From: Dimorphilus gyrociliatus
Lineage: Eukaryota; Animalia; Annelida
Length of the DNA: 64,000 nucleotides
NCBI GenBank assembly: GCA_904063045.1
Contig: CAJFCJ010000034.1
Location: 133,649 to 197,648, forward strand
Direction: 5' to 3'
Shown here: positions 13,326 to 61,465 of the stretch, one piece after another
Numbering within the stretch: the stretch's first letter is position 1
Layout of the letters: every line of letters starts with the position of its first letter
The notes under the pieces: generated by a model
What the model was told of the DNA's origin: nothing
Databases searched by the model: none
What the model saw: the letters and a program-made list of their open reading frames with translations, nothing else
Made by a program: the position numbers and the translations under genes

Positions 13326-15174
13326 TTATAGTATCTTGAATAGCAAAATAACCATTACCTAATTTATTAAGATGCAAAAATGGTCAATGTATTGGATTTG
13401 AAGATGTCTGCAATAATGAATACAATTGTCTAGACTATAGCGACGAAGACTGCATTACATATGCTGCATCAGATGGAAAAATATTGGGTTTATACATAGA
13501 ATAAATTCAAATATTCTCTATTGATATGTAACATTGCAGAATGTCATCCGGAGAATCAATTCTTTTGTGATAACAAATGTATCAGTAAAAATCAAACATG
13601 CGATTCTATAATAGATTGTGAAAGTATTACAGATGAAGTCACAGATCAGTGCAAGTAGGTCAGTTTCAGTGTATTGCATAAATTTATGATATATCAAGTT
13701 CATAGGAGCAAAAATTTCGGCCCGACTACAAATAACTGTCGCGTTAAGTATAATTCCATGGGACTTATAAGAACAAAAGTGAATTTTCCCTTTCTACATT
13801 TAGAGAAATGTAGCCTAAGTCGTTGCCGTTCTGGTGAATTTTTGTGTAAAGAACATAAATTCTGTATATCAATCGAACAAGTTTGCGATGGTGTAAATCA
13901 TTGCTGGAACAATGAAGATGAAATTGAATGTGGTAAACGTTCATTTCAATTCACACTTCATTTCTCTTCATTCAATCTCTTCTCCTTTTTCTTATTAGAT
14001 CATTTTGCTCCCATGGGTTTTTTCAAGTGTAAAGGACACCGTCTCTTTATTCAGTCTCATAAAAGATGCGACGGAATAGTTAATTGTCCGACAAGAAGTG
14101 ACGAACTATTCTGCCTTTCCAACTATACTAATTGTCCACAATATTGCGATTATTGGCCTCTTTATCAGATCAGATGTGTAAGAAATGATGGCGTTGGATT
14201 TGTCAATTTCTCCCTCGATTCAATAGATGGTCGCCATACGCTATCAAAACAAGTTCATGCAATTAATTTCGACAATTTAATTGGTACGATAAGATCGGAC
14301 GAAATGACTAGTTTACGCGTAGAAAATGTCACAAACCGACTGGATAATATAAAAATACTATGTCGAAATCTCGCTATTATAACATTGATAAAGATAAAAA
14401 TGGCGAACATCGACCATCTTTTCGGAAATGAATCGATGAATGTTTTACAAAGTTTACATCTATCAAACTCATTGTAAAACTTTTTCTACAATATCAAACT
14501 TTAAATTGAATAACGATGCATACGTTTGGTTTATAACTGTTTTTATTCCAATTAATTCTATATTAAATCCTTTAATCTATTCGTTCGATGAATATAGAAA
14601 CTCGAAAGCTAAGAAAAAGGTTGGGAAACAGTTGAAAGGTAATTGAAACAACTATATACATGTATATAACTTTAACATATATTATAATTAATATATCTAC
14701 AATCTTATAGGAAAGCTGTACTTGATAACGCAATCTCAAAAAGTTTGAATTATATTACATAACATAATACTATTAACTAATTCATTCATTCATAATTTTT
14801 TACTTGAATTCATAGTTTTTGAATTTTTGAAGAATCAACATCAATTTAATATATGCAATCGTAATTTTCCAAATTCCTTAGTATGCTTTAAACTGGATAA
14901 AGTATTTTATACTCGTTCATATTTTATTATATGCGCAAAAGATATTTGCACTGCTATTGCATACTTTCACCAATGTCAATTTAGTATTAATGAAACTTTA
15001 ACAATTGAAGAGATATTCGTTTCTAAATGTGATAGTAGAAATCTTCCGGAATATTTTCTTAAACCAACTAAATTAATTAAATTGGATGAAAATTACGAGA
15101 AGAAAGATATTTTATCATTTGGTTTACTTATAAGATTTTCGCTTCAGAAGAAAAGCGCATTTCTTAAAGGATAA
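11065..15174 (+). pseudogene. Receptor A: GRL101-like SRCR/CTL/LDLa-LRR-7TM paralog, frameshifted and internally deleted, with kinase-like tail
   Basis: Signal exon disrupted near 11112-11137. SRCR-like FCSISGFD, CTL CHGVNTLSLYDTCYFF, several LDLa exons (13.0-14.1 kb), LRR N-cap CPQYC. A short LRR is joined out of frame to TM7 (VFIPINSILNPLIY) at about 14475; tail ORF 14827-15174. Confidence 0.65.
12948..13581 (+). repeat. 634-bp near-identical tract shared with 18357-18978 (LDLa exons plus introns)
   Basis: Direct comparison from aattgttccttat to ...gataacaaatgta. Differences are a (TA)n length change, a 2-bp indel and a few substitutions. Confidence 0.9.
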
Positions 15175-15342
15175 ATAACAATTTTATGTATTTTTCAGTT
15201 GATTAAATACAAGTATCTCTTCTATTTCTCTTTATCTTTCAATTGATTAAAAACATTATATAATTGATATTTAATACAATTACATTAAATTAGAATAAAC
15301 TAATATCTTTTCAATTGTCTATTGTCTATATGAAGAGAAGGA

Positions 15343-18300
15343 ATGACAAGTTTAATGCTCTTCCCTTTCTTCTCTTTTCTTCTTTTTCACAATTACCTTT
15401 TAGGCGAGCAAGTTAAAGAATTTACAATTAATACAACTTATACATTTAAGTATGTAATTGTTGAAGAGACTTTAGCAAGGGTGAAAGGAAAATATCAAAT
15501 ATTCGATAAACGTCTTAATAAATCTTATCCTGCTTCGTTTCCGTCTTGTTCAAGTATCGCGTATGATCGAATATGCCAGAAACTTGGATACGATAATTTA
15601 CACACAGTACCAGATATATGCAGTTTTAAGAAAAGTAGATATACTCTTCTCTTACATTATGTACACTTATCATCTTTCTTATTTAAGGTACCGATCCTCA
15701 TGCTCTAATATTCAAAAAGAAAGATTTAACTTGCTGCGATTTGTAAGTTGTAATAATTTCTGTTTAAGAATGATGAAAATGGGCATTTTCTTATCATTCA
15801 TTATATCCATAGTACAATTTCTAATAACGAAGAAAGAAAAGAATATTACGAACTTTGCTTAACTTGTTTTAGAACAGATGTTTTATGTAAAAGGACTATT
15901 GAATAATATAAAAAGAGAGTTTTTATAAAGATTTACCTTCAATTTTGATAAATATAGATCTATTTGGTTTTATATTTAAACATACTATTCTACTTTCAAT
16001 TCGTTTGCAAAAAAAAGTCTTTTAAAGGCTATATAACAAATAAAGATTTAAAGAGTGCAGTATGCTCTCAGATTCAATTCAATATTGACTTTAGAGATTA
16101 TAATGAAACGGAACTAGTTTTAAAAAATGTCTCTAACATTAAACCTCCAACTGCTAAAATTCTTATAAAGCCTCATAATTTAAAACAATTGTCTTGTTTA
16201 ATGAGCGAAATTCAAGGTAAAGAATCTTATGTTTTTTATTCTCTTTAATTTATATTTTAAATATATTGCGTAATATTTCTATTTTAGATATATTACCAAT
16301 CTTACTTAATAAATCGCAGGCTATATCATTCGTCATGGATAATACCAAAGTAAATATACCTGGAGTAATATATTCCAAAACATATGGAATTAGACCAATA
16401 CTGTATATTCAATTAACAGTCAATCTTATTGAATTGAATAGCATAAGTGAATTGTATTGTAAACATTTTCAATTGATAAGAAGCCCACTGTTGTCTTTTC
16501 GTTTTGGTTTTGAACAGGTTATCTTATATATTAATATAGATATATAGTATTTAGTATAATGTATAAGTTACGAACGATAGGCGAGCGTCGGCAGTAAAAT
16601 ATAATCGCAAAGTTAATTAACAATACAATCTTTTTAACTAATCAAAAAATGACATCTGACAAAAAGAGTTATCTTCCTCTATATGATATAGTTTTCAAGT
16701 TTATTCCCTTCTAGTTTAAACTAAAATTAGATAGAATTTAATGAGATTCTAATTCTTCAATCTCAAGTTTCACTAAAAACTACAATATAAACCCAAAGGG
16801 CAACGAACGATTCATTGATTTCACTCTGATATCTCATACCTGTATTTAATGTCTTGTACAACGAGCGATATTCTTATATACTTATATTTATAATATTTTA
16901 AAATTAGACTCCCATTTGTATTCAGTCAACAAATTATCATCATAAAGAAGTTTGAATTACATTATTGACAACTTGAATAATTTTATTCAATTCTTCATTT
17001 TCTATTCTCTAAAGAGAACCATACATAATTTTCAAAACTGCAATTCAACACTTTCATCTTGTAATATCATTGAATATCGTTATATAGAGTATTTTTACAT
17101 ATATAATATAACTTGTGAAAAAAACAATGGATTTAAAGTTTGTATAACACGTTATTTGTTTGTTAAACTATAAAGTTTTTTCATTATATATTTCTTTCTT
17201 CTACTAAAAGACTACCAATTAAGATTTTATGATATAATAACTGGAAAATACTACATAAATCAATCGGATAGTGCATTTTTAACATCTATAATAGGATACT
17301 TACAAATATTTTATATTAATAAATGGTACTCTTTTGAAAGATACATCTTCAAACAGCGACTTATGTTGCTAGTGTGTAAACATTTTGGTTTTCAATCCGG
17401 TTCATACAGAATACAGAAAACTGATATTATAATAGATTTTGTCAATGCGTTTACGATAATATGCCCGAAAAGTGCTAAATCCTTAATAGATTGTTCTTTT
17501 AAAAGAGTTAATAGGTTTGTTATTTTATAGGTAAAAAGATCATCTCTTTCATTTCATTCTGCAGAAAACTTTTTTTAAGGAATCTTGGGATGAAGAAATG
17601 CTCCAATATCCAATAAATTGTTATAAAAACCTACAAAAAGGCAGAGTTAAACTACTTTCCTCTTAACAAAACAGTTAACAATTCTATTTTTAGATTGTCA
17701 ATATCCAAATTCATTCAAAATACAAAACATATGTTATTATATGATCACTGAGGAAAAAACTTTATCAATCTTAGAACAGTACAACAACTGCCAAAAGAGG
17801 AACCTAACTCTATTTGACGATTCATTTAATCTTAATAGTTATATTCTTTATTTTTTCAAAGAGACATTAGACTTTCAAAACAAGTTTCATTCCGTTCATT
17901 CAAGTAACCAGTTTTCTTATTCGAATATTTTACCAATTATTAATATTAAACTTACTTTAAGCTATATTCAAAAGAAAGATTGGAGAAAGGGATATATTAT
18001 TATCACCATCAAACTTACCTTATGAATATCTATCTCAAATTGAAATCTTTCAGATGTCTAATCCTGAAAAAATTGCATATTATGAAAATAAATATCAGCC
18101 ATTTATCACATACAAAGAAGTCTGTTTTGTATTCACTGTTGAACGATTTAATAAATTCATAGTCACAAAACTTCCTCTGCCATGTGCATATAAGAACTCA
18201 AAAACCTTTATTTGCCAAAACCGTCCAAGTATTTACAAACAAACATTAGCTAATAGCTAAAATCTGAAAAACAGGAAAATCATTTACATCTTTCCTACTT

Positions 18301-20732
18301 TAGAAAATATCTATACATTAAATTACTATCATCATATATACTTTGACGACAATAAGAATTGTTCCTTATACTCATTTTATTGTTCTTTTGACAAGTACTG
18401 TATTAATAATATCTATGTTTGCGATGGTGAAAAAGATTGTATTTCCGGAGAAGATGAGATTGATTGTAGTTATATAACGCATTTCACTTGTATCAAATCA
18501 TTAAAGAAAATACCATATCACTTCGTTTGCGATTGTAATAAAGACTGTTCAGATGGATCGGACGAACATCTCTGCGGTAGATAACATCAATTCTTATTAA
18601 TAGCCTCTTTCTTTATCTTGACACTTTGTTTTATTAAATATTCTCTTAGAGAGAAAGCCATGCGGATTCGATAAGCGAAAGTTGGTCATTCACCTTACAT
18701 ACATATATATATATATATATCATTATAGTATCTTGAATAGCAAAATAACCGTTACCTAATTTATTAAGATGTAAAAATGGTCAACGTATTGGATTTGAAG
18801 ACGTCTGCAATAATGAATACAATTGTCTAGACTATAGCGACGAAGACTGAATTACATATGTTGCATCAGATGGAAAAATATTGGGTTTATACATAGAATA
18901 AATTCAAATATTCTCTATTGATATGTAACATTGCAGAATGTCATCCGGAGAATCAATTCTTTTGTGATAACAAATGTAATACCATAAACACACTCTGCAA
19001 CTTTCAAGCTAACTGTAAAGATAAGACTGATGAGGATCAAACTACTTGTCAAAAGAAGTATTTTACATTAGATATTTATTTTCTAGGCTAACCATTTTGA
19101 TAGCTCACAAAGTTCAGAGTTAAAATATAGTAATAATATACAGAAAAATTCAAAAGAGAGAAATTGAAAATTGTCGAGTTTCGTATAATACTAAGAACGA
19201 AATAAAAATTAACGTTCATCAACCTTACGATAACCTCAAAAACTGTAATTTACAATCTTGTCTGTATGGTGAATTTTTGTGTAAAGAACATAAATTCTGT
19301 ATATCAATCGAACAAGTTTGCGATGGTGTAAATCATTGCTAGATTGAATGAAGATGAAATTGAATGTGGTAAACGTATTGTGATTTGTATTATGGTTTCA
19401 ATTTTTCTGAAAACAGCCGTTCTTGGTTATACAGTAATAGCTGCCGAGCAATTGGAACTGTTTTGAATGTATCTTTAATTGTTTCAATAACTGTTGTGTT
19501 TTTTATTTCTTTGAAAGTATTTCTAATAGTTAGAGGGTTCAGTTCAAAGATATATTTAAGGAAAATTATCTTCGTTCTCTTCGGAATAATCTTGATTTTC
19601 ATAGTTATTTTTACCATTTTTGCATCCTTTCATTATAATGTTAGAGTTTTGTTTCTATTTTAACAATAACTAATGTTTTATAAATTTATCACTGAAGGAT
19701 AAATTTTCGCAAGACGTTCTCTGTCTGAACCTAATACTTTCTTATAAAAAGTATGAATCATGAACTATTTGATTTGCTAGTTATGCTTTTGGAATTTCAG
19801 CAATATCATTTTTTTTAAATTTATCATATGTATATCTCATTCTAAGAGGTTTTATTAGGAAAAGCAAAGACTCTATAGCTATATTCCTTAGCGATTTAAT
19901 AGAAAGATTAATTTTCCTTTTACGTTCTTCTCTATTTATAATTGTAACACTCTTTGGTAAGGATTGTTATATATGTATATACAGTATATATAGTATAGAT
20001 GATTACTGCTTTTCCAGGAAGTTTTATGACTAATTATTCACTTATTAAAATGATAATTATATCAATAAGCTCATTATATCAACCTTGGTATTTTATAGTA
20101 AATTTCTTTCAAGAATATTTAAAGAGAAGAAAAGAACTAAAAAAAATGAATAGGTAGGTTAGATATTAAATTATAATCTTTATAAAAGAAGTAAGTTTTA
20201 TATAATATAGGCTGAATTACTTGAAAAATATTGAAAAAAAACAACAAATGGGAGGTTTTTTTTTTTCTATGTTAACAAATAGTTATTGTAGTCATTTATT
20301 ATTTATTTAAACAATTCAACTATGGAAATATCAAAAATTAAAGAGATTTTTCTTTCAACATATAAATGCCAAGTTTAACAAGCTTCAATTTAATGATATA
20401 TTCTATAATAATTGCAATTATCTAAAATGTATTAAAGACTTAACGGAAGTGTTATGCGTTTGTCAAAAGATTAATTTATGTATTAATAATGACATAGGAA
20501 AAGAAACAATATTTATCAAGGTAAGAACAGCCTTCTTCTTCTTCTTCTTCTTCTTACAAGTGTTTCTCTTCTAAATATGATATTTTAATAGAAAAATCAT
20601 TGTAATAAGTATAATTACATGATTAATGTTGAAGAGTTTACTATTATAGATGAAAAGAATGAATATAGAAATATGAACGATGTAGTTAATTTTATTCAAT
20701 TGATAATAGATAATCGAAATGAAAACTGGTAA
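15343..20732 (+). pseudogene. Receptor B: GRL101-like paralog lacking LRRs and TM1-2, with kinase-like tail
   Basis: Signal MTSLMLFPFFSFLLFHNYLLG; SRCR-like ICQKLGYDNL and VCKTFGFQSG; CTL CQYPNSFKIQNICYY; LDLa exons 18.4-19.4 kb (last has frameshift/stop). Then directly ECL1/TM3 (SRSWLYSNSCRAIG), degenerate later TMs, and tail exons at about 20420-20520 and 20591-20732. Confidence 0.6.
18357..18978 (+). repeat. Second copy of the 634/622-bp LDLa tract
   Basis: Matches 12948-13581 as described there. Confidence 0.9.
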
Positions 20733-24939: not shown

Positions 24940-25013
24940 GGCTTTGTGGCTTAGTTGGTTAAAGCGCCTGTCTAGTAAACAGGAGATCGAGGGTTCGAAT
25001 CCCTCCAAAGCCT
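24940..25013 (+). tRNA. tRNA-Thr (AGT)
   Basis: GGCTTTGTGGCTTAGTTGGTTAAAGCGCCTGTCTAGTAAACAGGAGATCGAGGGTTCGAATCCCTCCAAAGCCT; arm CCTGT-CT AGT AA-ACAGG; T-run terminator. Confidence 0.96.
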
Positions 25014-30092: not shown

Positions 30093-33000
30093 ATGAAACT
30101 ATTGTGCTTTATACTTTCAATACATTTTGTGTATTTGGAGATTTGCCAAAAAAAAGACTTAAAGTTTGTAAAGATGTTTAATCTTTTTTCTATTTTAATA
30201 TTTCGTGTTATCTATCATCAAAATTCAGCTTGGAATTCTTAAGTAAAAATGTTAGTTTTCATCTATTAAATATATCTAACTACGATAAATTTTCAATTGT
30301 TGGAGAATTAAATATTAAAATAGATGAATTGGACGTTTTATATTCAATACAATACGATTTTAATCATTATTTAAATCAATTTCAAGATGTATCATTAAGC
30401 ATATGTTCAAAACTTGGCTACGATAATTTAAAAGTCAATGTATTTACATGTCGTCAATCTGAAAGTCAGGCTTTTTTATTTATATTTTGAATTTCATTAA
30501 TGATTTATTAATAAGTTTAATCTTTATTATAAAAGATCTAAATCGTATTTTACTTGTTTGCAATAAAGGAAATTGTAATATGTAAGTTTTTACATAAAGT
30601 TAATAATTCTGGTTATATAAATAAGTTACTTTCGTAAACAATTTTTAGAAAAAGTACTTTATCTTGTCGGAAAGATTTTTATAAATCTTCTAAATTCTAT
30701 TGCATAAGATGCTTTTTAAGAGAAAAACCATGTAACAAGAGAATGAATAATAACTATATTCTTAATAATCTATTAGATTTATTCTATACCGGTTTAGATA
30801 TATATTTTACTGAAATTTTCGGAGAGGATACCGAAAAACAATTAGCGTTTGTAAGATACGAGAATAAATCATATAGATTGTGCGCAAACGTTTCACATGA
30901 TTACGAATATTATGGTTGTAGTTCGACTTATTGTGACTATGAATCGGACGTCTCTTATATGGTTGAAAAACAAGCGATACTAGTCACTTCCAATACGAGT
31001 CAAGGAAAAGTTGCTAAAACTTCGTTCATGTTCTCTGCGAATGACGGACTTTCAAATACCCATTTCAATATTATAAACAACTGTATAACAATCAATCTTT
31101 ATTATACTGAGGAAAAAGGTTTCTTTCGTTAACTATCTTTTTCTATATATAGAAAATTCATAATTAATCAGATATGGAAATAACTTATAATTTCTCATCA
31201 AATTCTAATAGAACAAATCTGGAAAATCCCTTAAAAGCTACAATATATAGCAGAAGCTTTGGTCCTATTGATATCATTTTGAAAAAGATATTAAACCAAG
31301 GTAGATAATTAAAATATGAATTTTACTTTTTCAATTGACCTTTGACATTAAAAATGTTCAAAGATGTTAGCGCAGTACACGGATATTCAGTATGTAAATA
31401 TAATCTAACACTCTACGACGTCTACTTTGAGAGATGTTCAGATAATAATGAAATAATTAACTTTGGCGGATCCTTTTATGTAGAATTTAAAGCACATGGT
31501 ATTAGTTTGCTAAAGAGACGTTTATCTATGCTACCTAAAGAAGATACAACATGTCTAAAATTCTATTGTATAGTTAAACAACAAAAAACTAAATCAACGT
31601 TTCGATTATCAAAATATAATTCAATATTCTATAAGGATAATCTATTTAAGCCGAGATTATTTATTGGTACTTTGGAAGCTTATTATCAAAATGGTTGGAA
31701 GAAAATTCTGGCATTTCATCTACAATATAACGATATTCAAGTTATTATACATATACAGTATAGAGTATTTCATTTCTATTGTATATTTTTAAGGTTGCTT
31801 GTAAATATTTCGGATATAAATATGGAACTATAGATACTATTGATCAAAAATTTGATTTTTATATAAATAAAAGATACGCCATTATGAATTGTACTGATAA
31901 GAAACTTTTAGATAATTGTAAATTATCATCAGATTCAAATTTAATTGCCAAATTTTTACCATCTATTGCAAGATACGCTAATCTTCCAACTGTTGTTATT
32001 ACATGTACAAATGCCATTAAATTTGGTTTATATACTATTTTTCTCTGTTATACTATAGTTTCTTTTAATTAATAATTCTTTTCAGAATGTCTTATGAAGA
32101 ATTCAATGATTTACAAGAAGAAATGCTATTATTTTTTCCCATCAGAATTACGTTTAAATCATACTGAATCGAATAGTCTATGTTCAAAACATAACTTATC
32201 TACTATATCTATATCTGCATTTGATGAAATTCAATTTTTAAGAATTTTTCTACTTTATATGTCTAGTCAGTTCAATTCGAAAGTTGAATTTGAAAGTATT
32301 CCTTTAAGTTGGATTAAAGCTATTCTTTATTTATACTTTCTATTCAAGTGTTCCATCTTTTATAGATATTTCATGGGAAAGAGATATAAGTCAGAAACCT
32401 ATTCTTACTTCTGGTAACGTTCCAGTTTCTCTTACGTCACCTTGGCACTTTCCTTCAATTAAGTCCAGGTTTTGCAAATATAAAAACACATGTAAAATAG
32501 CGTTACCAACGGTTTCTTCATTATCTAGGTTAAGCTGTTTGAAATATCTTGTTAAAAAGGAAAAAATGATTAATAAACTTGTAAATTGTGCAAAGTATAA
32601 TCCTGATAAAGGATTAATAAGTGAATCTTGTTCAAAGAAGCATTTTAATACAGTTATTTGTCAAAACTTTTTAAGTAATATCATTGTTCAAAACTGTAGA
32701 AAACGATTGTGATAATTAAAAAAACATACAGCTCTATCTAGCCAATCAAATTCGAAAGAAACTCTTTCATTAACGCCTTTAAAAGAAATGGAAATAACTT
32801 TAAAGAACAATATGTTTCTTTGCAAATCGGATGACATATACATCAATTCGATTTATCAATGCGATAATCAAATTGATTGTCTTAGCGGCGAAGATGAAAT
32901 AAATTGTACAGAAACAAAGACATTCTTTTGTTCAACTAACGAGACAATATCTGTAAAATATATCTGCGATTATGTAGTTAATTGTAAAAACGGTATTGAC

Positions 33001-36000: not shown

Positions 36001-36066
36001 CTATTTATAAGAAAGAAACTACAGAAACACCATAAGTTTGTTCGTCAAAAGGAAAAGGATACTTAA
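30093..36066 (+). CDS. Receptor C1: GRL101-like SRCR-CTL-LDLa-LRR-7TM receptor with kinase-like tail
   Basis: Signal MKLLCFILSIHFVYLEIC; ICSKLGYDNL and ACKYFGYKYG; CTL CLMKNSMIYKKKCYY; LDLa exons 32.8-33.9 kb; LRR-7TM ORFs 33854-35131 and 35264-35893 (NLFFCDWLM, IDRF, TNIICWIP, NPILY); last exon 35911-36066. Confidence 0.85.
33660..34449 (+). repeat. 790-bp near-identical tract shared with 43392-44181
   Basis: From ggagaatttaaatgc to cagaatattgatga. I see only a 2-nt difference (gc/at near the start). Spans an LDLa exon, an intron, a further LDLa, the LRR N-cap and several LRRs. Confidence 0.93.
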
Positions 36067-42200: not shown

Positions 42201-45200
42201 TTACAAGATACAGTAAATCAGATTCTGATTGTTCTGCATTTGATTCTAAAAATGGGTTTTCATCAAGATTTTGTAATAAAGATTACACTATAACTGTTTG
42301 CCAAAAGGATTATGGTAATGCTACTTGAAGTGTTTCTATTAAAGAACCAAATATAACGTTCTTATGAATAATCTTTATATTCAATTTCATAGAAAATTTA
42401 ACTATTCCAACGATGGATTTAATAAATTCTCCAGAAATTGGCGTTTGTCCTAAAAACTCTTTCTTCTGTAGAAGGGATAAAATATGCATAAATTCAATAA
42501 ATCAATGTAACGATAAAGTTGATTGTTCAGATGGAGAAGATGAAGAAAACTGTTCAAATCCTAAATATTTTATCTGTGAAAATGGGAATAGAATACTTGT
42601 TCAGTTTGTTTGCGATTATATTGCGGATTGTTCAGAAAAAGAGGACGAAGAAGATTGCGGTTTGTTATGAAAAAAATCATATTTTCACCCATCTATAACA
42701 ACTAAATGTTATTTAAAATCATATTTTCTAGAGTTTCAAACATGTGTAGATTCTTCATTGTAAGAAGTTTTAATACAATAAAGCACTATCCTTCAAAGTC
42801 TATCAACTATTTCAACAATAATAGATTTCAATGTCAAAATTCTCAGTGTATTCCAAAGATACATCGTTGTAATGGTGATAGAAATTGTTTTGATACTTCA
42901 GATGAAATTTGTAATGGTAAGAGGAAAAGAAAAGTCATAATGACAATTAGAATATCAATAATATAATTTACTACATAAATTCAATAGAATGTGATAAAGG
43001 TTTCTTTCATTGCGACGACAAATGTCTTCCTTATTCTTTCGTTTGCGATTTTAAACAAGATTGTAAACTAAACACTGATGAAACTATGGAAATGTGTTTT
43101 ACAAAGTTTGGAAGCCTTATACAATTTCGTAATTTATATTCATTAGCTTTACTTTATAAACGTAATATCTATTCAAGTACAAGCATTTATATTTTAGACT
43201 CAGACTGTTCTCAGTTTGTACGAAAGACAAACGGATTGCCACTATTCGACCCAAGTAAATATTCTTTTGATAAACCTGATTATACAAAAACTGTTTGCAC
43301 TTTGGAATATGATTCGTTATCTCGAATGAAAACAAGACCATACAAACCGTATAACCATTTGAAAAAATGTATAAATCATAAATGCTCATTGGGAGAATTT
43401 AAATGCATTGAAGAAGGATATTGTATATCTATTCGGAATGTTTGCGATGGTATCAATCATTGTTCTTTAGGAGAAGACGAACGTCATTGCGGTATTCTCG
43501 CAAATCATTATTTTACAGTTATTCTTATTTCTAAATTGAAACATGATGTTGCATTGCAGAGAGATTTAAACCTAAAGGCTTTTTCTTGTGCAAAATGAAT
43601 AAGACTTATGTAAATATAAGTAACGTTTGCGACGATATAGTTGATTGTTTTGATGGATCGGATGAAATGTACTGCAATGTATTCTTTCAATGTCCTTACA
43701 ACTGCATTTGTAAGACTAGTTTTCAAGTCGAGTGCAATTTTCTCGATAAAATTGAAAACAACGTGAACATTTGGACGAAAATTTTCGTAAAGACGCTAAC
43801 AATCAATGGTGGAAGGCGTCTAAACGAAACGTTACATTTCTTCAATAATCTCTCTTTAGTTTATCTGAACGTTTCGAACAGTTTGATTGATTTGAACGAA
43901 TTGAAGGATTTTTATCCAAATCTTGTTATTCTGGATTTAAGCTATACGAAACAAACATTAATAAATTCCAGTCATTTAAAAACTTATAAGAAACTGCAAA
44001 ATCTAATTCTGGAAGGAAATTTGTTGAAAGTTTTAGATTCGACTACGTTTTTTAATGAAAAAATGAAATTTCTCGATTTATCTAAAATGGAAATTGAAAA
44101 TATCAAAGAAAATTCATTTTCAACATTAAATCAATTAACTCATTTGAAAATATCGAATTCATTAATTCAGAATATTGATGATAATAGTTTTAAATCGATT
44201 TCTAATCTAAGAGTATTACATTTGAATAATACTATATTATCTAGAAATGAACGACTACTGTTCATAAAACGTTTACAATCTATTAATACTATTTATACGG
44301 AAAATAGTCTGATTTGTTGCATTGCTTGGAAATTTTGTAAACATTTAAGAATTTGTCTATCAAATAATAATAAAATATATAAAATATCTAATTGTCAAAA
44401 TATAATTAAATCAGATTTTTTAAGGATTTTCATAAGATTTTCAATGGTTTTTGTATTTATAGAGAATTTAATCATTCTCTTATTAATAATTTTCTTTAAA
44501 AGGAAATTATTCAATCCAATAAAGATTGGAATTATCTTCTCAGATATGATTTTAAGTTTTCAATTATTAACTTTGTTATTGGTTGATATTCGCTTTACAA
44601 ACACAATATTCAATAGCTATAAACATTTTCATGTTTACGAAAGTGTTTCTTGTTATTTAACAATAATATTTGAATATTACTATTATTTTGGTTCTTGTTT
44701 ATTTATAACATTACTTTTTCGTGTTTATCTACAAAAATCACGTGAAAATATTAGATTAAAGATGATTTTTATCCAATTATTTTTAATGATAGTAATAATA
44801 TTCAAGTGTTTCTTTTCTATTCATAATTTTCAATTCTGTTCATTTTTATGTTATAAATTTAAAGAAAATGATAGAACGTTGTTGTTTAACGTTTTAAATG
44901 GAATTTTAATAGTTTTATTATATTTTCTATGCATTTCGATGAACATTAATTTTTTGATAACAAAAATAAAGGAATTATCGAATTGGAAAAGGATATTCTT
45001 GGAATGTGAAGGATTTTTCTATATTTCTATTGTTATAAGGGAAATATTTACGTATTTATTAATAATTCCAAGTAAACAATATCTTTTATTGATAAATCAA
45101 TGTGTTTTATACATAAATTTCAATTTTCAGCTTTACTTAAACAATTCATTATTGATGATGAAAATATTGAATTATGGTGTCACTATATTCAAATTGTAAT

Positions 45201-45828
45201 AATGCCAATTCTAACAAGTCTAACAGGTTCTACGTTACTTTATAAGGAAATTCGAAATCTTATAGAAATTTCAAAGAGAGAAATAAATTTGAAAAGGTTA
45301 AAAAGTTCTTTTTCTTTCTCTTTATGAAATAATCTTGAAGAATTTCTCTTTAGAATCGAACTAGTAAGGGAAAATAAGGAGAAAAGTAAACAATAATTAA
45401 CATTCTTTTTCTTATATTTTTAATTTATGATAATTTATTCATGAAGTGTTGAAATTTGTCAAATTGTTCACTTGTACATCTATTAAATCATCTTTAAAGC
45501 ATATTCATTTAAAGAAGAAGAATTGTACCATAAATTTAAAAATGATATATTTTCATTACAAAAGGCTCGGTAGTATTCTTTATAGATGTCATTGTTGTCA
45601 ATTTTCAATATCTGGTAAATATTTTGGAGTGTTTACTCAAAGAAAGGTCTTTTTTGTTTTACACCGGCTTAACCTACTTTAATCTTAGTTTTTCTCTATA
45701 TTTAGATGGAATTAATGAATATTCATCAGCTAAATTTCATTAATTTAACCGATGAAAAGAATGATATTAAATGGTTTGGTTTATATTTAAAACAGAGTTT
45801 ACAAGGTTACTTTAGGCATAATGAATAA
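36228..45828 (+). CDS. Receptor C2: GRL101-like receptor with highly divergent 7TM and kinase-like tail; TE nest in one intron
   Basis: Signal-like start (approximate), ICKNMGYDHL, LDLa exons 42.4-43.6 kb, LRR-7TM ORF 43586-45199 spliced to the 45130-45327 region, tail exons about 45446-45645 and 45706-45828. Confidence 0.7.
38494..42141 (+). mobile_element. Decayed Tc1/mariner (Tc3-like) DNA transposon hosting a nested BEL/Pao element
   Basis: Imperfect ~55-bp inverted repeats at 38494-38547 and 42087-42141 (tatataaagtaa-ctt-ataaaa-atgg-acacc-aattttga-taggccaac) in TA context. Transposase fragment WSKVIFTDEARFSLSGPDD at 41868-41924. Confidence 0.75.
38751..41821 (+). mobile_element. 5'-truncated, internally deleted BEL/Pao LTR retrotransposon
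   Basis: Protease LMDAGSQ; RT VVFDC, ADIKKMFCQV, RHVFGATSS, FYVDD; most of the RT-RNaseH region missing; integrase HKEAAH, CPYC, GVDHAGP, GGLWESLVK. PPT aggaggggggag, then a 158-bp 3' LTR TGTT...AACA (41664-41821). Confidence 0.9.
43392..44181 (+). repeat. Second copy of the 790-bp LDLa-LRR tract
   Basis: Matches 33660-34449. Confidence 0.93.
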
Positions 45829-46929
45829 TAAATTCAATATTCAAGTTATCGTTATCATTAAATGATTAAATAATTTAATTTATTTGATATAAGAGTCTTT
45901 TGTAATATCATGGTTCAGCTTCACCTAACCTATACGCCTTATTGGCTATCCATCTTAAATTTATTGAAAGTTTCTAATAACAATGGCTGCCGAAGCCTGT
46001 CTCCGTAGTCCACGGATTGCATTCATACATTCATACAACACACTCTCTTATTCAATTGAAATTATTAAGAAACACTTTATTTTTAACAATGCATTCAAAT
46101 TCTTCTTAGTTAAACCCTGTCTTCGCTAGAAAAGGTTGTAAGTTTTTTCTTTTGGAGTATTATACGAAAGAAACTCCCGAGTACAAAGATATCTTCTTTC
46201 TCATTCATCACATTTAACGGCGCAAAATCAATTCCATGAATGCTAAACGTAAAATCAGACGACCTTGACTTCTAAATGTTATTTATTTAATTGAATAAAG
46301 AAAAAACAGATATAATCTATGTTTATAGAATACAAACCGCTTTATAAATCATATCTTTTGAGAATTTTCCATTCATAGATAATTTATGTTTATGGCAATA
46401 TTTTAGAGCCGTTGTTAATTGTTTAATACAATAGAAATAGGTCAAATTTTCATAAAATTCTAAATTGAATTCCATATAGTTTGATATATTCGTATTTGGT
46501 TTAATTAGAATAAAATTATTATCGTAATTCTTTAGAAATTCTATAACTGTGAGAAAGAAACAAACGATTTCTTTCAAAAGAAAACATTTAATACAATAAT
46601 GGAAATAATTAACAATTTGCCGTTAAAGTTGATTGAAAATCTTCGAAATGCTTTAATCTATTAAAAAAATAAATATAGAATATTGTTAATTTCATATAAA
46701 AGAGGTTATATAATACCTTTGAATTTTTGATTTTTGCTTCCTTTTTCTATATTCTCTTAATACTCCACCAAATGAATATATAAATGGATTAAGGACGCAA
46801 TTTATTGGAACAAGGACAGTAACAAACCAAATGTATACATCATTATTAATTATTAATTTAAATATCACGGAATAGAATCCTTAATGAAATAGAAACCGTA
46901 TATTATATTAACTACGATATATAGACTGT

Positions 46930-47090
46930 ATCATTGAAGTCGACTGGAAAACGTCTATTATATTTTAAGGTTATGGTTAGGGTTAAATACGGACGTTTTC
47001 CGTCGAATCCATTAATCCTTTCTTCTATTTACCAACTAATGTTATAGGAAACCAACAAAGTACATTTGTTAAGATTATTACGTAAATTGT
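46930..47090. mobile_element. ~161-bp insertion with an internal inverted repeat enclosing TTAGGG-like hexamers
   Basis: Arms tcgactggaaaacgtc (46940-46955) and gacgttttccgtcga (46992-47006); spacer contains ttaagg ttatgg ttaggg ttaaat; tgt on both sides. Removal restores RLQFNSLYIVVNII. Confidence 0.6.
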
Positions 47091-50000
47091 TAAATTGTAA
47101 TCGAGTTATTTGTGGTATTTTTGCTATGTTTAACACTGTTAAACTGTTAAACTTTAATCTACTTGCTCGAACTATTCTTAAAATATCCAAATATAGAATA
47201 ATAACCAACAATGATAAAATGAACATAAACATTCCGAATACGACGAATGAATATAACCATCCCTCCGATCTATCGCTTCTTATATGAATTTTAAAACAGA
47301 TAGGATTTTGGGAAAAATAACTCTTTTGGTTGAAACAATTTTAGTAATTAGTTAATTAGTTAATTAATTAATTAATTAGGATATATTTCATTTTACCGAA
47401 TATAAATAATGCGGTAAATTACCAACTATTACTGAAAAGCATACAGAACATAGGCATACTATAATTATCGATTTGATTGACATATGATGTGTTATTGGAT
47501 GTTTTATTGCACGGTGTCTTTCAACACTTAGTAAAAGTAGATTTATTGCAGAAAGTAATAGTGCAGTATTAAAGACACCACCGATAATTTTACATGTTAT
47601 ACCAAATCTCCATTCTTCGTCGTGTATTATAAAATTTCCCCTAAAATAAAAATCCGCAATTCCAATTGCAATAAAATAGCATGACGTCATAAAATCTCCT
47701 ATAGTTAAAAAGATTTCAAAAGAATTCCTTAATTTTGTCATTTTCAATATTCTATAGGATAGGGAAAATATATTTCCAAAAAAGCCTAATATTCCAATTA
47801 TCCATACTGCCGTTTGAATAAGCTTATTACCCAATAAATTTGAACAGGTATTTAACATTGATTTATTTGGAACACAATTTCCAGAATTTCCATAATATTT
47901 CCACATCAAACAACATAATTTATAATAATTTCCAATGATCTTTTCGATTTTATATAGATATTTAATGGCGTATATTCCTCTTTCAGATGGAAAAATTGTA
48001 TTATTCATTAAAAGTTTCCTTAATTTTCCAAATGATTTAAATGCAATTTCATCTAAATATTTTATAAAACAATTGTGAAAAGTTAAACTTTTCAATTTTG
48101 TTAAATTTTTAAAGATATATTTAGAAAATATTGAAATTTTTGTACTTGAAATATCAAGGTATAATAAATTTAAATAAATACTAAAAGTAAAATTTAAAGG
48201 TATATTTAAAGGATTAAATGATAAATCTAAATATTGCAGATTATTCATTTTCCAATTTTCAAGAAAACTAACATTTGTTAGAAAGCTATGTCTTAGATTT
48301 AAAGATATTAAATTAACAAATATTGATGATAGTACAAACTGTTTAAAAAGACAATTTTCAATTGATAAAATAGCAATACTATTGAATTTCACTCCTTGAA
48401 ATGATAATTCGGTATTTTTTATATTCAACTGCTTATATCTTGATGATGAATGTATTGTTAAAATTTCATAATTCATCTTTATTGGGAGGATACAATCAAG
48501 TATATAAAGTATAGAACAACTACAACCAATTGGGCAATTGGCTTCATTCGAACAAAATAATTCATCGCTACCTTCTATACAATTAATGATACTATTACAA
48601 ACTTGAGTGATATTTATGAATTTCTTTTGATTTTTACATTTAAAATATCCGTAAGGTAGAAAATTCTCTTTTATTAAACGATATACAAATATACAGTATT
48701 CACTAATTGTTTTATTAATATCTTTTAATTACCGCAATCACTTTCATCTTCTCCGTGAGAACAATGATTTATACCATCACATACTTGTTCAACGGATATA
48801 CAATATTTAAAGTGTTTACAGAAAAATTCACCAGGTTTACATAAATTTTCCATATTACAATTACTTAAATCGCCAAAAGGAAAGTGTACTTTTGTCTCCA
48901 AGTTACCTTTAGAATTGTACAGAACCCTACATCTAGTCTTTTTCGCTCTGAACAGTTGATTGCGAGTTGGCCTAAATTATGTAGGATAAATATAATAATT
49001 AGCAATACTACTACATTATTATATAGTTAGAACCATTTCTTATTTCTATCGATTAAATAGCTGAAACAGTACTCTAGCGGTTCGTCACTACTATCCCAGC
49101 AATGATTTTGAAAGTCGCATTGAAAAGTTTTACTATGGCATTTATCGTCGCAAATGAATTGATAACTACCGGAACAATCTACATTGGAAATCAACGGAAA
49201 AATCTATTATCAATTAAAAAAAACAAAAGAATTGATAACGTTCTATTATATACTATAGAGATAATTATCAAGAATCTCCAAATTAGTTTCCTCATCTAAT
49301 CGAATTTCACAATTCTCATCAGTTAAATCAATACAATTATATTCATTATCGCAGTATTGTTGGGTATCATTTAAACATTGATGATTTCCGCATCTGTTTA
49401 AAAGTTGATTTCATTTCATATACAGTATAAAGAATATAAACAGAGAGAAAATGATAGAAACTGTAAATTATCTGGGCAAAAATCTCTTTCTGCATATTTG
49501 AAGAAAACAAACAGTATTATTAATTTAATGCAACAACTTTTAGTACTATTATTCATATTTAACCGCAAAGCTCTTCGTCTGATTTATCTAAACAATCGTA
49601 TTTAAAATCGCAAACCAATTGAAATGGTATCTTCCCTGATCCATTATTACAAAAATAGTATTGGATTCTATTACAGTTTTCTTCGTCTTCTCTTGATGGA
49701 CAATCAATCTCTCCATCGCAACGATATACACCTGCTATACATATTCCATCGTTTTGGCAAAAGAAACTTGGCAATGTACATAGAGTAAAATTTTGAACAG
49801 ATAGGAACTTGTTGAATGGCGGATAAATTTCATTTTCTATTAGAGATAATAGAGATAATCATTTAATTATTATATTTATATATACTGTATATCAATTTGA
49901 ATCAATTACTAAGTAATTTTTGACATATGAATAGATAAATATCTTTCTTTTTACAAGATGTTGAAGTTATTAGACGAGCTTTTGTAAATGAATTTGTTAT

Positions 50001-56211: not shown

Positions 56212-56568
56212 TAAACAGAACGTTATATACTAACGTTCCGTTCACATTACATGATATGAGTGAATGTGTGTTAGTGTGCGAGTGTCAGTGTCTGAGAGTC
56301 ACTTAAGAAGGGAGTTTGACTTAGCCCAGAGTCGGGACAGTCCAACTTGATGTTATGCCACATCGTTGATAATGACGTGGCATGAACGTGGCATGAATGT
56401 GGCAATACAGATGAGCACAGTCAAACACCCAATTAAGTGACACTAACAAAGTATAAAAGGGAGTGAATGTAATAGAACGGTGTGAGAGACCAAAAGAATA
56501 TCAAATAAAATTTATACGAAATTCTTAGGAATTTCGTGCTATGAGCGAAAAACAAAATCTTATAAAGT
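56212..56568 (+). repeat. 3' LTR (357 bp; lacks the last 10 bp of the 5' copy)
   Basis: Follows purine tract gggagag; first three bases TAA are the pol stop codon. Confidence 0.9.
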
Positions 56569-56759
56569 TGTCATAGTAATAATAATCTACTATAGGTTAT
56601 AGTTTAAGGATAATTGTTTTCTTCTATTGCACTTGAACACCTCTCCGGAAACTGTTTCCCAACTAATTATACTATCTGCAATACAGCATCAATAACCTAA
56701 TTAACTGATTTTCAATTAGAATTTTAACACACAAATTAAGCCTATAATCGGAATAATTA

Positions 56760-59700
56760 TTATAGAAATTTATTTCTCTTTTGTAAGATTTTTTTAATTA
56801 AATTTCCAATATTAAATAAATCTTTTTGAAACATTTCTTCATTATTTCCTGCATACAGAATACACTTTGATGTTATTGAATAGATTTTTCCAGTTTTTCC
56901 ACTCTGTTTTGACATGAATATAAAAAAAAAGAAACAAACTTATTCAAAAATATCTATAAATAGATTTATAATTGTTTACAATAAGATACAAATTCGATAC
57001 ATCAATTGATCCATTAAAAGACAAACTAGACTGATGACATTTACAAACAAGTTTTAAAATATCTTTCAACATTTTAAATATATTCATCATTCTATAAAAC
57101 TTTTTCATGTTTTTTAAACTTTCAACACAGATTAATGAATTAATTTTATTTAAAAAGTTTTCATTGTATACCAAATAGGCTAAATCTGAAAAGAAAAAGA
57201 GAGATTTCATTACAGAATGTTGTATTTTTCAATCAAGTTTTTACATCTTGATGCAAAAGATTCTTTAATATCATTAATATGATTTTGTCTGAAAATGTTG
57301 AAATAGATTGTAGAAGATTGTTTAAAGGGGAAGAATAAAAAATAAATGAATTGATACATTTTCTTAGCTTTTTGCTGTTTTAATGAATTATAATAAGATT
57401 TAAGATCTCGAAGCGTATACAATAATGGATTAATAAGTGAATTTAATGGTAAAATAATGATAATTATTGAAACATATAAATCTTTTTTTATAGTTAATTT
57501 AAATATTGAACTATAAATTCCTAAAAAAGAAATTGGAAACCAACAACATAAATTTGTAAAGACTATTAAAAATGCATTGATTTTAAATCTTTTCTGTCGA
57601 GTTTCAAACTGTTGTTGTTGATTATCTCTCAAATCTTTTGAATTTAATATTTCTTTCCATATTCTTATATATAAACCAAAGATTATTAAACATAATATAG
57701 ATATTAATAAGCCAAAGATAATAAATGAAAATAGCCATCCTTCACCTTTCTCACTGGATATTTGTATTGTAAAACAGATTGGACTCTTTGAATAGTATGA
57801 TTTATAGATAAAAAGTGGAACTGTTGACCCAAATCCAGAAATGATTACTACAACTAGAATTAATAAAATTGATTTTAATCTTGTTAATGATTTTTTAAAT
57901 GGGTGAATAATTTTTAAATATCTTTCAAGTGTAATTAACACTAGAGATTGAGATGATAATAGAATTGACCAACTGCAAAACCATCCAAGCGTTATGCAAT
58001 ATTTACTGTATCTCCATTCGTAGTCGTTCTCTATATAATTGCCTCTGTAGAATGAATCGACGCTTCCAACAATTGTTAAATAGACGTTTGTACACAAATC
58101 GGCAAATGACAATGTTAAATGAAAGAAATTTGTCCTTTTATCACAAATTATAACCCTGAAAATAATTGACATAAAATTTTCAATAAAACCAACAATAGAT
58201 AATATCCATAGCGTCCAACGAAGAGACGTCGATGCTAATAGATCGGAACAAGAATTAAATAATGACGTCATTGGATGACATTCTCTAATATTTCTACTAT
58301 ATTGCCAAATAAAACAGCAAAATGAAAAATATTGGCTATATAATATTTTCAATGACTGCAAAGGTTGAATAAGCGAACTTTTATATTTAAATGGAATAAA
58401 AGTTTGCTTTAATGATAAAATTTCAACAAATTTTAAACTATTAAAAACGTTACGATGAAAATCGAATATAAATGAATTTTCAATTTTTAAATTTATTAAT
58501 TTATTCAAATTTTTAAAAAACAACTCATTTAAATAATTTATTTTTAATGAATTAAAAATTATTGTTATTAAATTTTTGGAATTTTTTAAACTTGTTGTTT
58601 TATCCATTTTTAAATATTTTACATTTTTTATCAATAAATATTGTAAAATTTGTAATGAATTTGAAAATATTTTTGATAAATTCAATAATTTACAATCAAT
58701 TATTGATAGATAAAATAGATTTGGTAAGATTTTTGATATTGGAAAATTATTTAAATTTGACCAATTACGTAATGTCAATACGCTTGTTGAATAAATTTTT
58801 AAAGATGATAATGATGATGATGATAGTAATATTTTTTCAAGATTATCATCGTCAATCTCATTGAAAAGTTCAATTCTTTTGAATTTTTTTAATGTTTGAA
58901 TAATTTCAATTAAATTATTATTATTGTTAATTTTAATATTTTGAAGTGAACATTGGATTGAATAGACTTGAAAACAATGACAAGATTTTGGGCAAAATGT
59001 TAAATTTGAATTGCAGTATAATTCATCATTTCCATTTTGACAATCAATGATATTATTACAAATATCTTTTATTGGAATAAATGTATTTTCTTGTCTACAT
59101 TTTAAATATCCTTTTGGTCTAAAATTATCTAAATAATAATTGTTTTATTAATTTTAATTAAATAGGCCTATATTTGACTTTTTACCGCAATCGACTTCGT
59201 CATCTTGATGAGTACAATGAACTATTCCATCGCATACTTGTTTTATTGAAATACAATATCCGCCATATTTGCACAAATATTCACCGGAAGGACAAAATTT
59301 TCTATTACAATTCTTTAATACCAAAAACGGAAAATGGATATTTGTTGTTAGTTTACCCAATGAATTATAAACAATTTTGCATTTCGAATTTCTATTCAAA
59401 ATTGAACAATCTTTTTTAAATATTTCAATATTCGATTGACGACATTGATCTCCTTTTTCGTCTTCTTCATCAATACAATTCATTTGCAGATCGCAAACTT
59501 TACTTTGCGGTATACATTTATTATCGCATTCAAATTTATCATATTTTTCACATTCTGGATGAATGAATTGAATGAATGAATGAATAAATGAGATTTTTTC
59601 TCTTAATTACCTTTTATAGACTTTTTATCTTTTAAATTATCTTCCAACTGACATTTTTCATCGCTACTGTCGAAACAATTCCTTTCATTGTTACAAAAAT

Positions 59701-61434: not shown

Positions 61435-61465
<31 letters not shown>

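Follow-up and report, generated by a model that had tools for sequence, protein, structure and literature searches.

Kinase-fold modules and receptor-kinase fusions

KIND is a protein-protein interaction module (PMC2064798, PMC5928657) and, as is probably the case for the receptor tails described here, a kinase-fold module derived from the C-lobe with neither an N-lobe nor catalytic residues. Unlike the worm tail, KIND retains the later C-lobe helices, has roughly double the length and belongs to soluble, multidomain proteins rather than to receptor tails. Even at E<=10, no tail member matches the KIND model of Pfam, and KIND structures (e.g., Spire KIND) are absent from the 50 best matches of either structure search.

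Seven-transmembrane (7TM) receptors whose cytoplasmic C-terminus carries a kinase-fold domain, a layout that the worm genes probably share, are known as GPCR-TKL/K and GPCR-TK from choanoflagellates and sponges (PMC12716839), and oomycetes and amoebozoans are among the groups for which GPCR-bigrams are described (PMC6033456). Among animals, such 7TM-kinase receptors had been reported from sponges only and were believed to be lacking elsewhere, and no member has been studied at the level of function (PMC12716839). The published fusions carry full, InterPro-detectable kinase domains on unrelated 7TM families, whereas the worm tail is a truncated, dead C-lobe core and its 7TM part, in an annelid, is of the rhodopsin-class LGR/GRL101 type. 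A complete, profile-detectable kinase domain after the 7TM was not found here, the tail being a fragment below Pfam detection. No report of the same receptor design in Bilateria was found in the literature.

GRL101 and other type-C LGRs (Lymnaea GRL101, arthropod LGR5) share with the annelid genes an ectodomain of LDLa and leucine-rich repeats (LRRs) and, with three of the six copies, a recognisable rhodopsin-type 7TM behind it. The mollusc GRL101-like receptors differ in ending in tails of their own, of about 100 aa, without similarity to the worm tail in profile-profile comparison, and the annelid genes have extra N-terminal exons. The possibility that the first conserved block of the worm tail continues the conserved mollusc GRL101 tail helix ('AEEVVRVCVRSGVVRRE') was rejected, as hhalign detected no similarity. 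Pseudokinases with a degraded catalytic apparatus (RNase L, PEAK3, PAN3 and NFR5) are among the best structural matches of the tail; they differ from it in keeping both lobes and in often binding nucleotide, while the tail has no N-lobe and no alphaG-alphaI.

The window, a 64,000-nucleotide stretch of DNA of the annelid Dimorphilus gyrociliatus, probably contains a GRL101-like cluster with a conserved post-TM7 module that comes from a kinase C-lobe core and would serve in docking or dimerisation. It is possible, if doubtful, that the tails are the remnant of an ancient fusion of an LGR-type rhodopsin-class receptor with a kinase and still act as a built-in signalling scaffold, which would define a bilaterian class of 7TM 'receptor pseudokinases'. 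Other animals may still have fuller 7TM-kinase versions; when 1.84 billion proteins were searched with the tail profile, no intact-kinase relative came up.

A tandem cluster of GRL101-like copies

The locus is a tandem, fast-evolving cluster of six GRL101-like receptor copies, named A, B, C1, C2, D and E. The closest database relatives of E, at 25-30% identity, carry the name GRL101-like, and Pfam finds Ldl_recept_a and LRR_8/LRR_4 modules in the ORFs of A, C1, C2 and D. The sequence-only reading took all six copies for GPCRs, which is too strong, because Pfam 7tm_1 and tblastn recognise a 7TM only in C1 (E=8.5e-8 and 2e-7), D (5.9e-9, with a frame break) and E (2.9e-24). Neither Pfam nor tblastn with E as query found a 7TM in A (TM7 only), B or C2. 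With a recognisable rhodopsin-type 7TM in three of the six copies, one of them frame-broken, 'family of signalling receptors' likewise overstates the cluster. Two BEL/Pao retrotransposons lie inside it. Around the neighbouring annotated gene, no other gene is recorded within 10 kb in a listing that may be incomplete.

The tails were located with a profile (tail HMM) built only from tails of a related species and run over the 1,821 stop-to-stop segments of the window, in which noise starts at E of about 0.08. The four copies on the plus strand are arranged as follows (window positions):

13521..15174, plus strand: gene A, truncated copy (ORFs, Pfam, tblastn, tail HMM)
13521-14477, plus strand: gene A LDLa repeats and start of the LRRs (ORFs; Pfam shows LDLa only)
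14482-14638, plus strand: gene A TM7, the sole TM kept (tblastn with E finds TM7 only; TM1-6 missing)
14639-14815, plus strand: gene A predicted intron, 177 nt, phase 1 (in-frame join)
14816-15171, plus strand: gene A single intron-less tail exon with both blocks, then stop (tail HMM E=8e-17)
15343..20732, plus strand: gene B, very divergent copy (tail HMM; no match in Pfam 7tm_1 or in tblastn with E)
19385-19663, plus strand: gene B TM-like ORF
ends near 20152, plus strand: gene B TM7-like exon
about 20311-20520, plus strand: gene B tail exon 1 with block 1 (tail HMM E=1e-9)
20521-20591, plus strand: gene B tail intron, phase 0, GT..AG
20592-20729, plus strand: gene B tail exon 2 with weak block 2 (tail HMM not significant)
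30093..36066, plus strand: gene C1 (Pfam LRR_8, LDLa, 7tm_1)
33854-35104, plus strand: gene C1 ORF with LDLa, LRR and TM1-4
35105-35165, plus strand: gene C1 predicted intron, 61 nt, removing an in-frame stop
35166-35848, plus strand: gene C1 TM5-7 and tail exon 1 (splice reading; tail HMM E=4e-5)
35849-35910, plus strand: gene C1 tail intron, phase 0, GT..AG
35911-36063, plus strand: gene C1 tail exon 2, then stop (tail HMM E=8e-6)
42413..45828, plus strand: gene C2 (Pfam LRR_8 and LDLa only; tblastn LRR only)
about 45434-45646, plus strand: gene C2 tail exon 1 (tail HMM not significant)
45647-45705, plus strand: gene C2 tail intron, phase 0, GT..AG
45706-45825, plus strand: gene C2 tail exon 2 (tail HMM E=0.04)

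A second mini-exon in gene A was rejected for its wrong frame; direct splicing works. Gene B has no AG acceptor before 'IQLW' at the position used by A and D. Gene C1 is apparently intact from the LRRs onward, and in gene C2, a very divergent copy, the LDLa and LRR modules are followed by a 537-codon open frame with a membrane part not recognisable as 7tm_1. An identical 773-bp patch is common to C1 and C2.

The remaining two copies lie on the minus strand:

46113..49774, minus strand: gene D (RNA contig joints; Pfam 7tm_1, LRR)
about 48725-49774, minus strand: gene D LDLa exons
47388-48476, minus strand: gene D LRR and TM1-4
about 47325-47030, minus strand: gene D TM5 and TM6 exons, with a frame change between ICL3 and TM6
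ends at 46717, minus strand: gene D TM7 exon
46716-46658, minus strand: gene D intron (RNA joint 46657/46717)
46657-46614, minus strand: gene D mini-exon, 44 nt
46613-46547, minus strand: gene D intron (RNA joint 46546/46614)
46546-46338, minus strand: gene D tail exon 1 (tail HMM E=3e-15)
46337-46272, minus strand: gene D intron, the predicted phase-0 one (RNA joint 46271/46338)
46271-46113, minus strand: gene D last exon with stop (tail HMM E=2e-6)
56760..62861, minus strand: gene E, best preserved copy (Pfam 7tm_1 E=2.9e-24)
upstream, to about 62861, minus strand: gene E N-terminal exons (LDLa-like cysteine patterns in upstream ORFs)
58778-57213, minus strand: gene E 522-codon ORF with LRRs, full 7TM (ERY, NPLLY) and start of the tail
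57244-57186, minus strand: gene E predicted intron, 59 nt, phase 1 (in-frame spliced tail)
57185-56980, minus strand: gene E tail exon 1 (tail HMM E=3e-8)
56979-56904, minus strand: gene E predicted intron, 76 nt, phase 0, GT..AG
56903-56763, minus strand: gene E tail exon 2, then stop (tail HMM E=1e-6)

In gene D, RNA contigs (run X1) link the TM7 exon to the tail exons across three short introns, with joints flanked by CT..AC on the plus strand (GT..AG on the minus strand), and the product translates in frame from TM7 to the stop. Coverage by RNA is very low. The frame change of this gene between TM5 and TM6, in the ICL3 region (about 47,100-47,125), is one that no GT-AG intron can bridge.

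A conserved tail behind TM7

The sequence-only reading had every paralog continuing past TM7 into a cytoplasmic domain of 130-190 aa with two shared blocks. The tails measure about 138 to 175 aa after NPxxY. Their in-frame connection with TM7 is shown in D by RNA, and in A, C1 and E it is predicted on the basis of short introns of canonical type. All 12 block peptides occur exactly once each in the six-frame translation, where they had been placed:

14935-15021 and 15094-15153, plus strand: gene A blocks 1 and 2
20431-20517 and 20670-20708, plus strand: gene B blocks 1 and 2
35765-35830 and 35974-36030, plus strand: gene C1 blocks 1 and 2
45560-45625 and 45751-45807, plus strand: gene C2 blocks 1 and 2
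46344-46427 and 46146-46205, minus strand: gene D blocks 1 and 2
56983-57069 and 56775-56831, minus strand: gene E blocks 1 and 2

The phase-0 GT..AG intron described between the blocks is found in the same five genes (B, C1, C2, D and E, that of D confirmed by an RNA joint) and not in A. The tail HMM recovers A, B, C1, D and E strongly and C2 marginally, C2 exon 1 and B exon 2 not being significant, and it detects no seventh copy among the window segments. The tail exon of A consists of 118 open codons, a run with a chance of 3e-5 at the stop probability of 0.083 per codon of this AT-rich DNA. Judged from sequence, the shared blocks exceed chance and the tails are a conserved family. At four loci of a related species, LDLa/LRR/7tm_1 ORFs are followed closely, on the same strand, by a tail ORF, and two of these loci have the same phase-0 intron in the tail. 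The profile search of 1.84 billion proteins retrieved only 9 tail ORFs (E down to 8e-8), and a word-indexed homolog search with the tail profile only 4 members, all known beforehand. Tails with such short exons are easily missed in annotation.

Several copies within the window are in decay. On one reading, most of the cluster would consist of decaying duplicates, with tails alike through kinship only and devoid of present function. Gene A is without TM1-6, B and C2 are without a recognisable 7TM and D has a frame break, and the two retrotransposons and very low RNA depth would also fit. Such a reading is nevertheless unlikely, for the tails are only 10-36% identical in pairwise comparison and still keep the motif positions, with frames open despite 8% stops per codon. 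Moreover, E and C1 look intact, and the module has been retained both by another species and on a different piece of the D. gyrociliatus genome.

Likeness to the kinase C-lobe core

The register proposed from sequence, in which the blocks correspond to alphaE, the catalytic loop and alphaF, was reproduced when the tail profile was compared with the PDB: block 1 aligns to a NEK1 stretch and block 2 to 'KSDIWALG'. Kinases account for 16 of the 18 matches (NEK1 E=0.021, GCN2 0.035), the alignment runs from alphaE to alphaF with its gap at the activation segment, and the tail residues with the strongest conservation correspond to the alphaE His and the alphaF Asp/Gly. Pfam Pkinase matches one of ten family members (E=0.017), but no member reaches the gathering threshold of Pkinase (PF00069) and no Pfam kinase model reaches its own. 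A Pfam scan of every tail piece of the window at E<=10 returned nothing, and phmmer with the A tail against the PDB gave only a chance match to TPRKB (E=1.1). The kinase signal became weaker (Nesprin-1 0.03, kinases 0.5-0.7) once the profile was enlarged by fragment rows; when split exons were entered as separate alignment rows, MAFFT misplaced the fragment ends. The look-alikes returned by a protein language model for three tails, the A tail of the window included, belong almost all to Pkinase clusters. The sequence evidence is thus weak and below conventional significance, yet it points to kinases.

The kinase reading is supported mainly by the predicted fold. The AlphaFold model of tail family member P0012 has a pLDDT of 86.9 and a pTM of 0.77 on a shallow alignment of 19 rows. 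The check proposed with the original reading, a structure search with such a model, came out in its favour, with kinase-like folds in all 50 best matches of two independent searches. Foldseek against the PDB gave kinases as 50 of the 50 best matches (probability up to 0.97, E-values 0.2-0.8). The second, Foldseek-independent search (VIA wide) of 48,161 chains aligned 93-112 of 116 residues. Its Z reached 9.7 with Rad53 and 9.4 with the pseudokinase of RNase L (residues 407-534, 100 residues aligned almost gapless), values of 8-10 being only slightly above those reached by unrelated models in the same search. The structural matches span about the hinge through helix alphaF. Shape search of the ESM Atlas gave TM 0.62-0.76 to kinase clusters, and a poorer model of the window's own A tail led to the same family of matches. 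In the AlphaFold DB, two 'GPCR family 1' proteins and one 158-aa 'protein kinase domain' protein match the model with their own C-terminal parts and are candidates for fuller versions in other animals. The models support the presence in the tail of a C-lobe core made of alphaE, the catalytic-loop hairpin, beta7-beta8 and alphaF.

It could be argued that the tail is a lineage-specific small alpha/beta domain without kinase ancestry, whose likeness is convergent and amplified by the kinase-rich training of AlphaFold and the language model. All sequence E-values are borderline with no Pfam model past threshold, the 1.84 billion proteins contain no fuller-kinase intermediate, and Z under 8-10 is common for unrelated models in the structure search. 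However, four kinds of method (a profile HMM, a protein language model and two structure aligners, these run with two models) converge on the same superfamily and sub-region, all 50 best among the 48,161 representative chains are kinase-like, and the most conserved residues fall on alphaE His and alphaF Asp/Gly, so that independent origin appears distinctly improbable.

A fragment rather than a full pseudokinase

HRD, DFG and APE were correctly reported as absent, and the chain does end after alphaF. Opposite HRD the alignment has N-G-x, of which the third residue varies, and the catalytic-loop asparagine is kept in few members only. The family alignment has no DFG at the end of beta8, and by the same alignment the DFA of gene D, taken as a trace of DFG, is probably not its equivalent. 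Beta8 and alphaF are separated by only about 12-15 residues, where the HMMER alignment needs a gap of 21-34 residues. The N-lobe (glycine-rich loop, beta3 lysine, alphaC glutamate) is absent, as TM7 and alphaE are just 35-90 residues apart, helix 8 included, this stretch has no Pfam match, and in the RNA of gene D the 44-nt mini-exon joins TM7 to the tail with no further exon. Helices alphaG to alphaI are missing as well, the reading frames stopping 10-25 residues past block 2.

The terms 'kinase-like domain' and 'pseudokinase' therefore oversell a C-lobe-core fragment of about 100-120 aa in which the N-lobe and alphaG-alphaI are not encoded. The tail is a C-lobe-core relic and not a full pseudokinase, because the N-lobe, HRD, DFG, the activation segment and alphaG-alphaI are missing. 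That it is half of a split kinase, pairing in trans with an N-lobe-like protein or a second receptor tail into a nucleotide-binding or active unit, is highly improbable, since the HRD Asp, catalytic Asn and DFG Asp vary or are missing among the family members and no partner gene is seen in the window, the sole support being that the fragment has clean ends at the borders of fold elements and that its fold is predicted with confidence.

Possible role and significance

The receptors would be built of a lectin-like N-terminus, LDLa repeats, LRRs and a rhodopsin-type 7TM, followed by a cytoplasmic module of about 100-120 aa. This module most likely descends from a kinase C-lobe core comprising hinge/alphaD, alphaE, the catalytic-loop hairpin, beta7-beta8 and alphaF, and would have lost the N-lobe, the HRD aspartate with the asparagine, DFG, the whole activation segment with APE, and alphaG-alphaI. 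Deprived of the N-lobe and catalytic parts, it is predicted to be unable to bind ATP or to transfer phosphate. The conserved positions are structural ones, namely the histidine of alphaE, an S-L-N-G turn where HRD would stand and the Asp-x-x-x-x-Gly of alphaF, and they point to selection for a fold. By analogy with KIND, the most likely role would be a non-catalytic one, in which the receptor tail offers a surface for docking or dimerisation. Paralogs in a related species and in other parts of the D. gyrociliatus genome share the module; the mollusc GRL101-like receptors do not.

If the tail does function as a module, the C-lobe core of a kinase, some 100 residues long, is able to last as a structural unit of its own, and the tail would be a second case, besides KIND, of a kinase turned docking domain, here on a G-protein-coupled receptor.

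Tail exons and their linkage to TM7

The sequence-only reading had described six tandem GRL101-like receptor genes (A, B, C1 and C2 on the + strand, D and E on the - strand) that continue past TM7 into a cytoplasmic tail of 130-190 aa with two shared motif stretches, block 1 and block 2. The twelve block peptides quoted there were all located, each once and where implied, and the tail extends 138-175 residues beyond NPxxY. A canonical GT..AG phase-0 intron separates the blocks at the same point in the five genes for which it had been proposed (B, 71 nt; C1, 62; C2, 59; D, 66; E, 76), and the gene A tail is a single uninterrupted exon. These 59-76-nt introns are consistent with the median intron of 66 bp in the genome paper on D. 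gyrociliatus, an annelid of miniature size (PMC7854359).

Contigs from a public run (X1), placed on 43500-49400, skip introns and hence derive from RNA. On the - strand of gene D, they contain three joints with GT..AG ends (46717->46657, 46614->46546 and 46338->46271), connecting TM7 ('NPFIYSF') to a 44-nt mini-exon, block 1, block 2 and a stop after 'SSEDRV'; the joint 46338->46271 is exactly the predicted inter-block intron. TM7 and the tail of D thus lie in one transcript, as had been claimed for all six genes, and for the others we infer the same linkage. In A, C1 and E, the frame from TM7 to the tail is open across predicted joins with canonical splice sites; in B, no acceptor was found at the position used in A and D. 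Gene A apparently skips the mini-exon, which is placed as follows:

46614-46657, - strand: 44-nt mini-exon of D between the TM7 and tail exons, present in RNA
about 20211-20254, + strand: candidate 44-nt mini-exon of B, matching that of D in size and phases

A conserved tail family

Among 1.84 billion representative proteins, a profile built from the tail pieces of the window matched only nine, all short ORFs (67-123 aa, E 8e-8 to 7.5e-4). The sequencing-run assemblies holding them carry a NAPE-PLD just 75% identical to that of the window (25507-26196, itself 100% identical to DgyrCDS14382 of Dimorphilus gyrociliatus), and the nine ORFs therefore come from a related species. At every fetched locus of that species, the tail ORF lies directly downstream of LDLa, LRR and 7tm_1 ORFs on the same strand, and two loci have a phase-0 intron of 60 or 69 nt at the same point as the window genes. 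In the reverse test, an HMM built from these foreign tails alone covered every open segment of the window (1,821 in total); it revealed no seventh tail copy.

Matches of the foreign-tail HMM to tail exons of the window (E-values)
A tail: 8e-17
D exon 1: 3e-15
B exon 1: 1e-9
E exon 1: 3e-8
E exon 2: 1e-6
D exon 2: 2e-6
C1 exon 2: 8e-6
C1 exon 1: 4e-5
C2 exon 2: 0.04
C2 exon 1 and B exon 2: not significant

Spliced tails are pairwise 10-36% identical, and motif positions are nonetheless kept. The consensus reads F-F/Y-x-N-x-x-Y and then C-I-K-x-I-x-x-A-I-x-x-x-H-x-x-x-F-S-L-N-G-x-F in the first part, and E-K-x-D-I-x-S-F-G-x-x-x-R-K-x-L-Q-K-K in the later part.

Likeness to the kinase C-lobe

Sequence signals for kinase likeness are weak and consistent. 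Pfam matched no tail piece of the window, and scores elsewhere were borderline: of ten family members, one matched Pfam Pkinase (E=0.017), and a ten-member tail profile run against all PDB sequences gave 18 matches at E<=10, 16 of them kinases (NEK1, 0.021; GCN2, 0.035-0.05; CDK12 and CaMKII, 0.45-0.9). In these alignments, block 1 aligns with alphaE plus catalytic loop, and block 2 with the beginning of alphaF ('D-I-W-S-x-G'), the register first proposed, with a gap of 21-34 residues at the would-be activation segment. A larger profile including exon fragments gave a poorer kinase signal. In a protein-language-model search, three tails, among them that of A, adjoin nearly all-Pkinase clusters with scores of 0.88-0.93, which the tool treats as leads only.

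Structure prediction is more telling than sequence methods on kinase origin. The model of one tail-family member (P0012), built from a 19-row alignment, has a pLDDT of 86.9 and a pTM of 0.77. Kinases make up all 50 top Foldseek matches in the PDB (probability up to 0.97, E just 0.2-0.8), and a Foldseek-independent search of 48,161 representative chains likewise returned kinase-like folds in 50 of 50 top rows, including eukaryotic kinases, pseudokinases, RIO, Bud32, WaaP and lanthipeptide-synthetase kinase domains. In the latter search, Rad53 scored Z 9.7 and RNase L 407-534 Z 9.4, with 93-112 of 116 residues aligned; an ESM Atlas shape search gave kinase clusters at TM 0.62-0.76. On the kinase side, the match starts near beta4/beta5 and the hinge and extends through alphaF to its end. 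The model of the A tail, from a poor alignment, has a pLDDT of 63, and its best matches are still kinases (top, RNase L 450-534, Z 6.5). True kinase ancestry of the tail is highly probable, with some doubt left because its support consists of a predicted model and borderline sequence scores.

Catalytic parts are missing, as had been noted. In the alignments, N-G-x stands in place of HRD, its third residue being variable, the catalytic asparagine is retained sporadically, and no DFG-like motif follows beta8; the DFA of D, noted earlier as at most a trace, lies off the DFG position. About a dozen residues stand in place of the activation segment and APE, and reading frames end 10-25 residues past block 2. 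The N-lobe is also absent: TM7 and alphaE are just 35-90 residues apart, and the RNA of D contains no extra exon. The tail is therefore not a full pseudokinase. Conservation is highest at the histidine of alphaE and at the aspartate and glycine of alphaF; these residues form a hydrogen-bond network linking alphaE and alphaF with the catalytic loop, which would explain why a catalytically dead remnant has retained them.

State of the receptor cluster

The AT-rich window (GC ~27%) does not contain six intact GPCRs bearing the tail. Gene E has a full 7tm_1 (2.9e-24) within a single 522-codon ORF, and C1 is intact provided that an in-frame stop is excised by a 61-nt intron, at a position where D has an intron too. 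The frames of B and C2 are open and hydrophobic, with no detectable 7tm_1. Gene A lacks ~1.3 kb coding for LRR and TM1-6 in its paralogs; the tail exon nevertheless remains open over 118 codons, for which the chance is 3e-5 at a random-codon stop rate of 8.3%. The 7TM of D is recognisable, with TM5/ICL3 and TM6 in different frames that no GT-AG intron can join, and the downstream part is still transcribed. A DNA contig from a second run (X2) agrees with the window over D and may itself be the assembly's source; candidate explanations of the frame change are recent pseudogenisation, a polymorphism and an error in the assembly.

13521-14646, + strand: gene A, LDLa repeats and first LRRs, then directly TM7
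47030-47330, - strand: frame change of D (about 47100-47125)
38800-41650, + strand: BEL/Pao LTR retrotransposon, split over several ORFs
50900-56250, + strand: BEL/Pao LTR retrotransposon, more complete

Both retrotransposons (Peptidase_A17, Integrase_H2C2, DUF5641 and DUF1759 domains) are GC-richer and lie inside the cluster; together with the degraded copies, they mark it as a fast-turnover tandem array, with perhaps two fully functional copies.

Several further features were observed:

33677-34449 and 43409-44181, + strand: 773-bp stretch identical in the otherwise divergent C1 and C2
22534-23190 and 26858-27239, + strand: near-identical LRR-coding segments, one on each side of the NAPE-PLD gene
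28747-29175, - strand: ORF with a Quiver-family Ly6/uPAR-like domain (Pfam QVR, E=1e-7)

The depth of the X2 contig is 640-680 across the 773-bp stretch versus ~142 in the flanks (~4.5x), hence the genome may hold more than two copies. The LRR segments look like a local segmental duplication. NAPE-PLD is the only called gene on record between positions 149155 and 170309 of contig CAJFCJ010000034.1 (window 15507-36661, 21 kb). Genes B and C1, an LRR gene and the Ly6-like ORF also fall in this interval; the deposited assembly may lack annotation of these four, or the gene listing may be incomplete.

A receptor-fused, probable kinase relic

Fused to these GRL101-like receptors is a genuine, conserved relic resembling the kinase C-lobe, transcribed in at least one gene; its position, conservation, predicted fold and lack of catalytic parts are established. 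It would act as a non-catalytic structural module, most likely by offering a docking or dimerisation surface on the cytoplasmic side of the receptor. KIND, the known interaction module made of the kinase C-lobe alone (PMC2064798, PMC5928657), is the parallel. If the domain is real, we give this role roughly even chances.

GPCR-kinase fusions have been reported from oomycetes, amoebozoans and choanoflagellates and, among animals, from sponges only, all of them still uncharacterised (PMC12716839). Among named proteins, mollusc GRL101-like receptors are closest to the 7TM part, and their tails show no detectable similarity to the annelid tail; searches of the literature on GRL101 with a kinase domain and on D. 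gyrociliatus GPCRs yielded no account of the tail. Among AlphaFold DB clusters, the tail model aligns C-terminally with three proteins (E 0.013-0.017), two of them annotated 'GPCR family 1 profile domain' (B3SDW0 and B3S8D3) and one, of 158 aa, annotated 'protein kinase domain' (B3SE90). Judging by their accessions, these three are presumably placozoan, and 7TM receptors that end in a kinase-like tail may occur in an animal phylum other than annelids. If so, the design may predate, and reach beyond, this annelid lineage.
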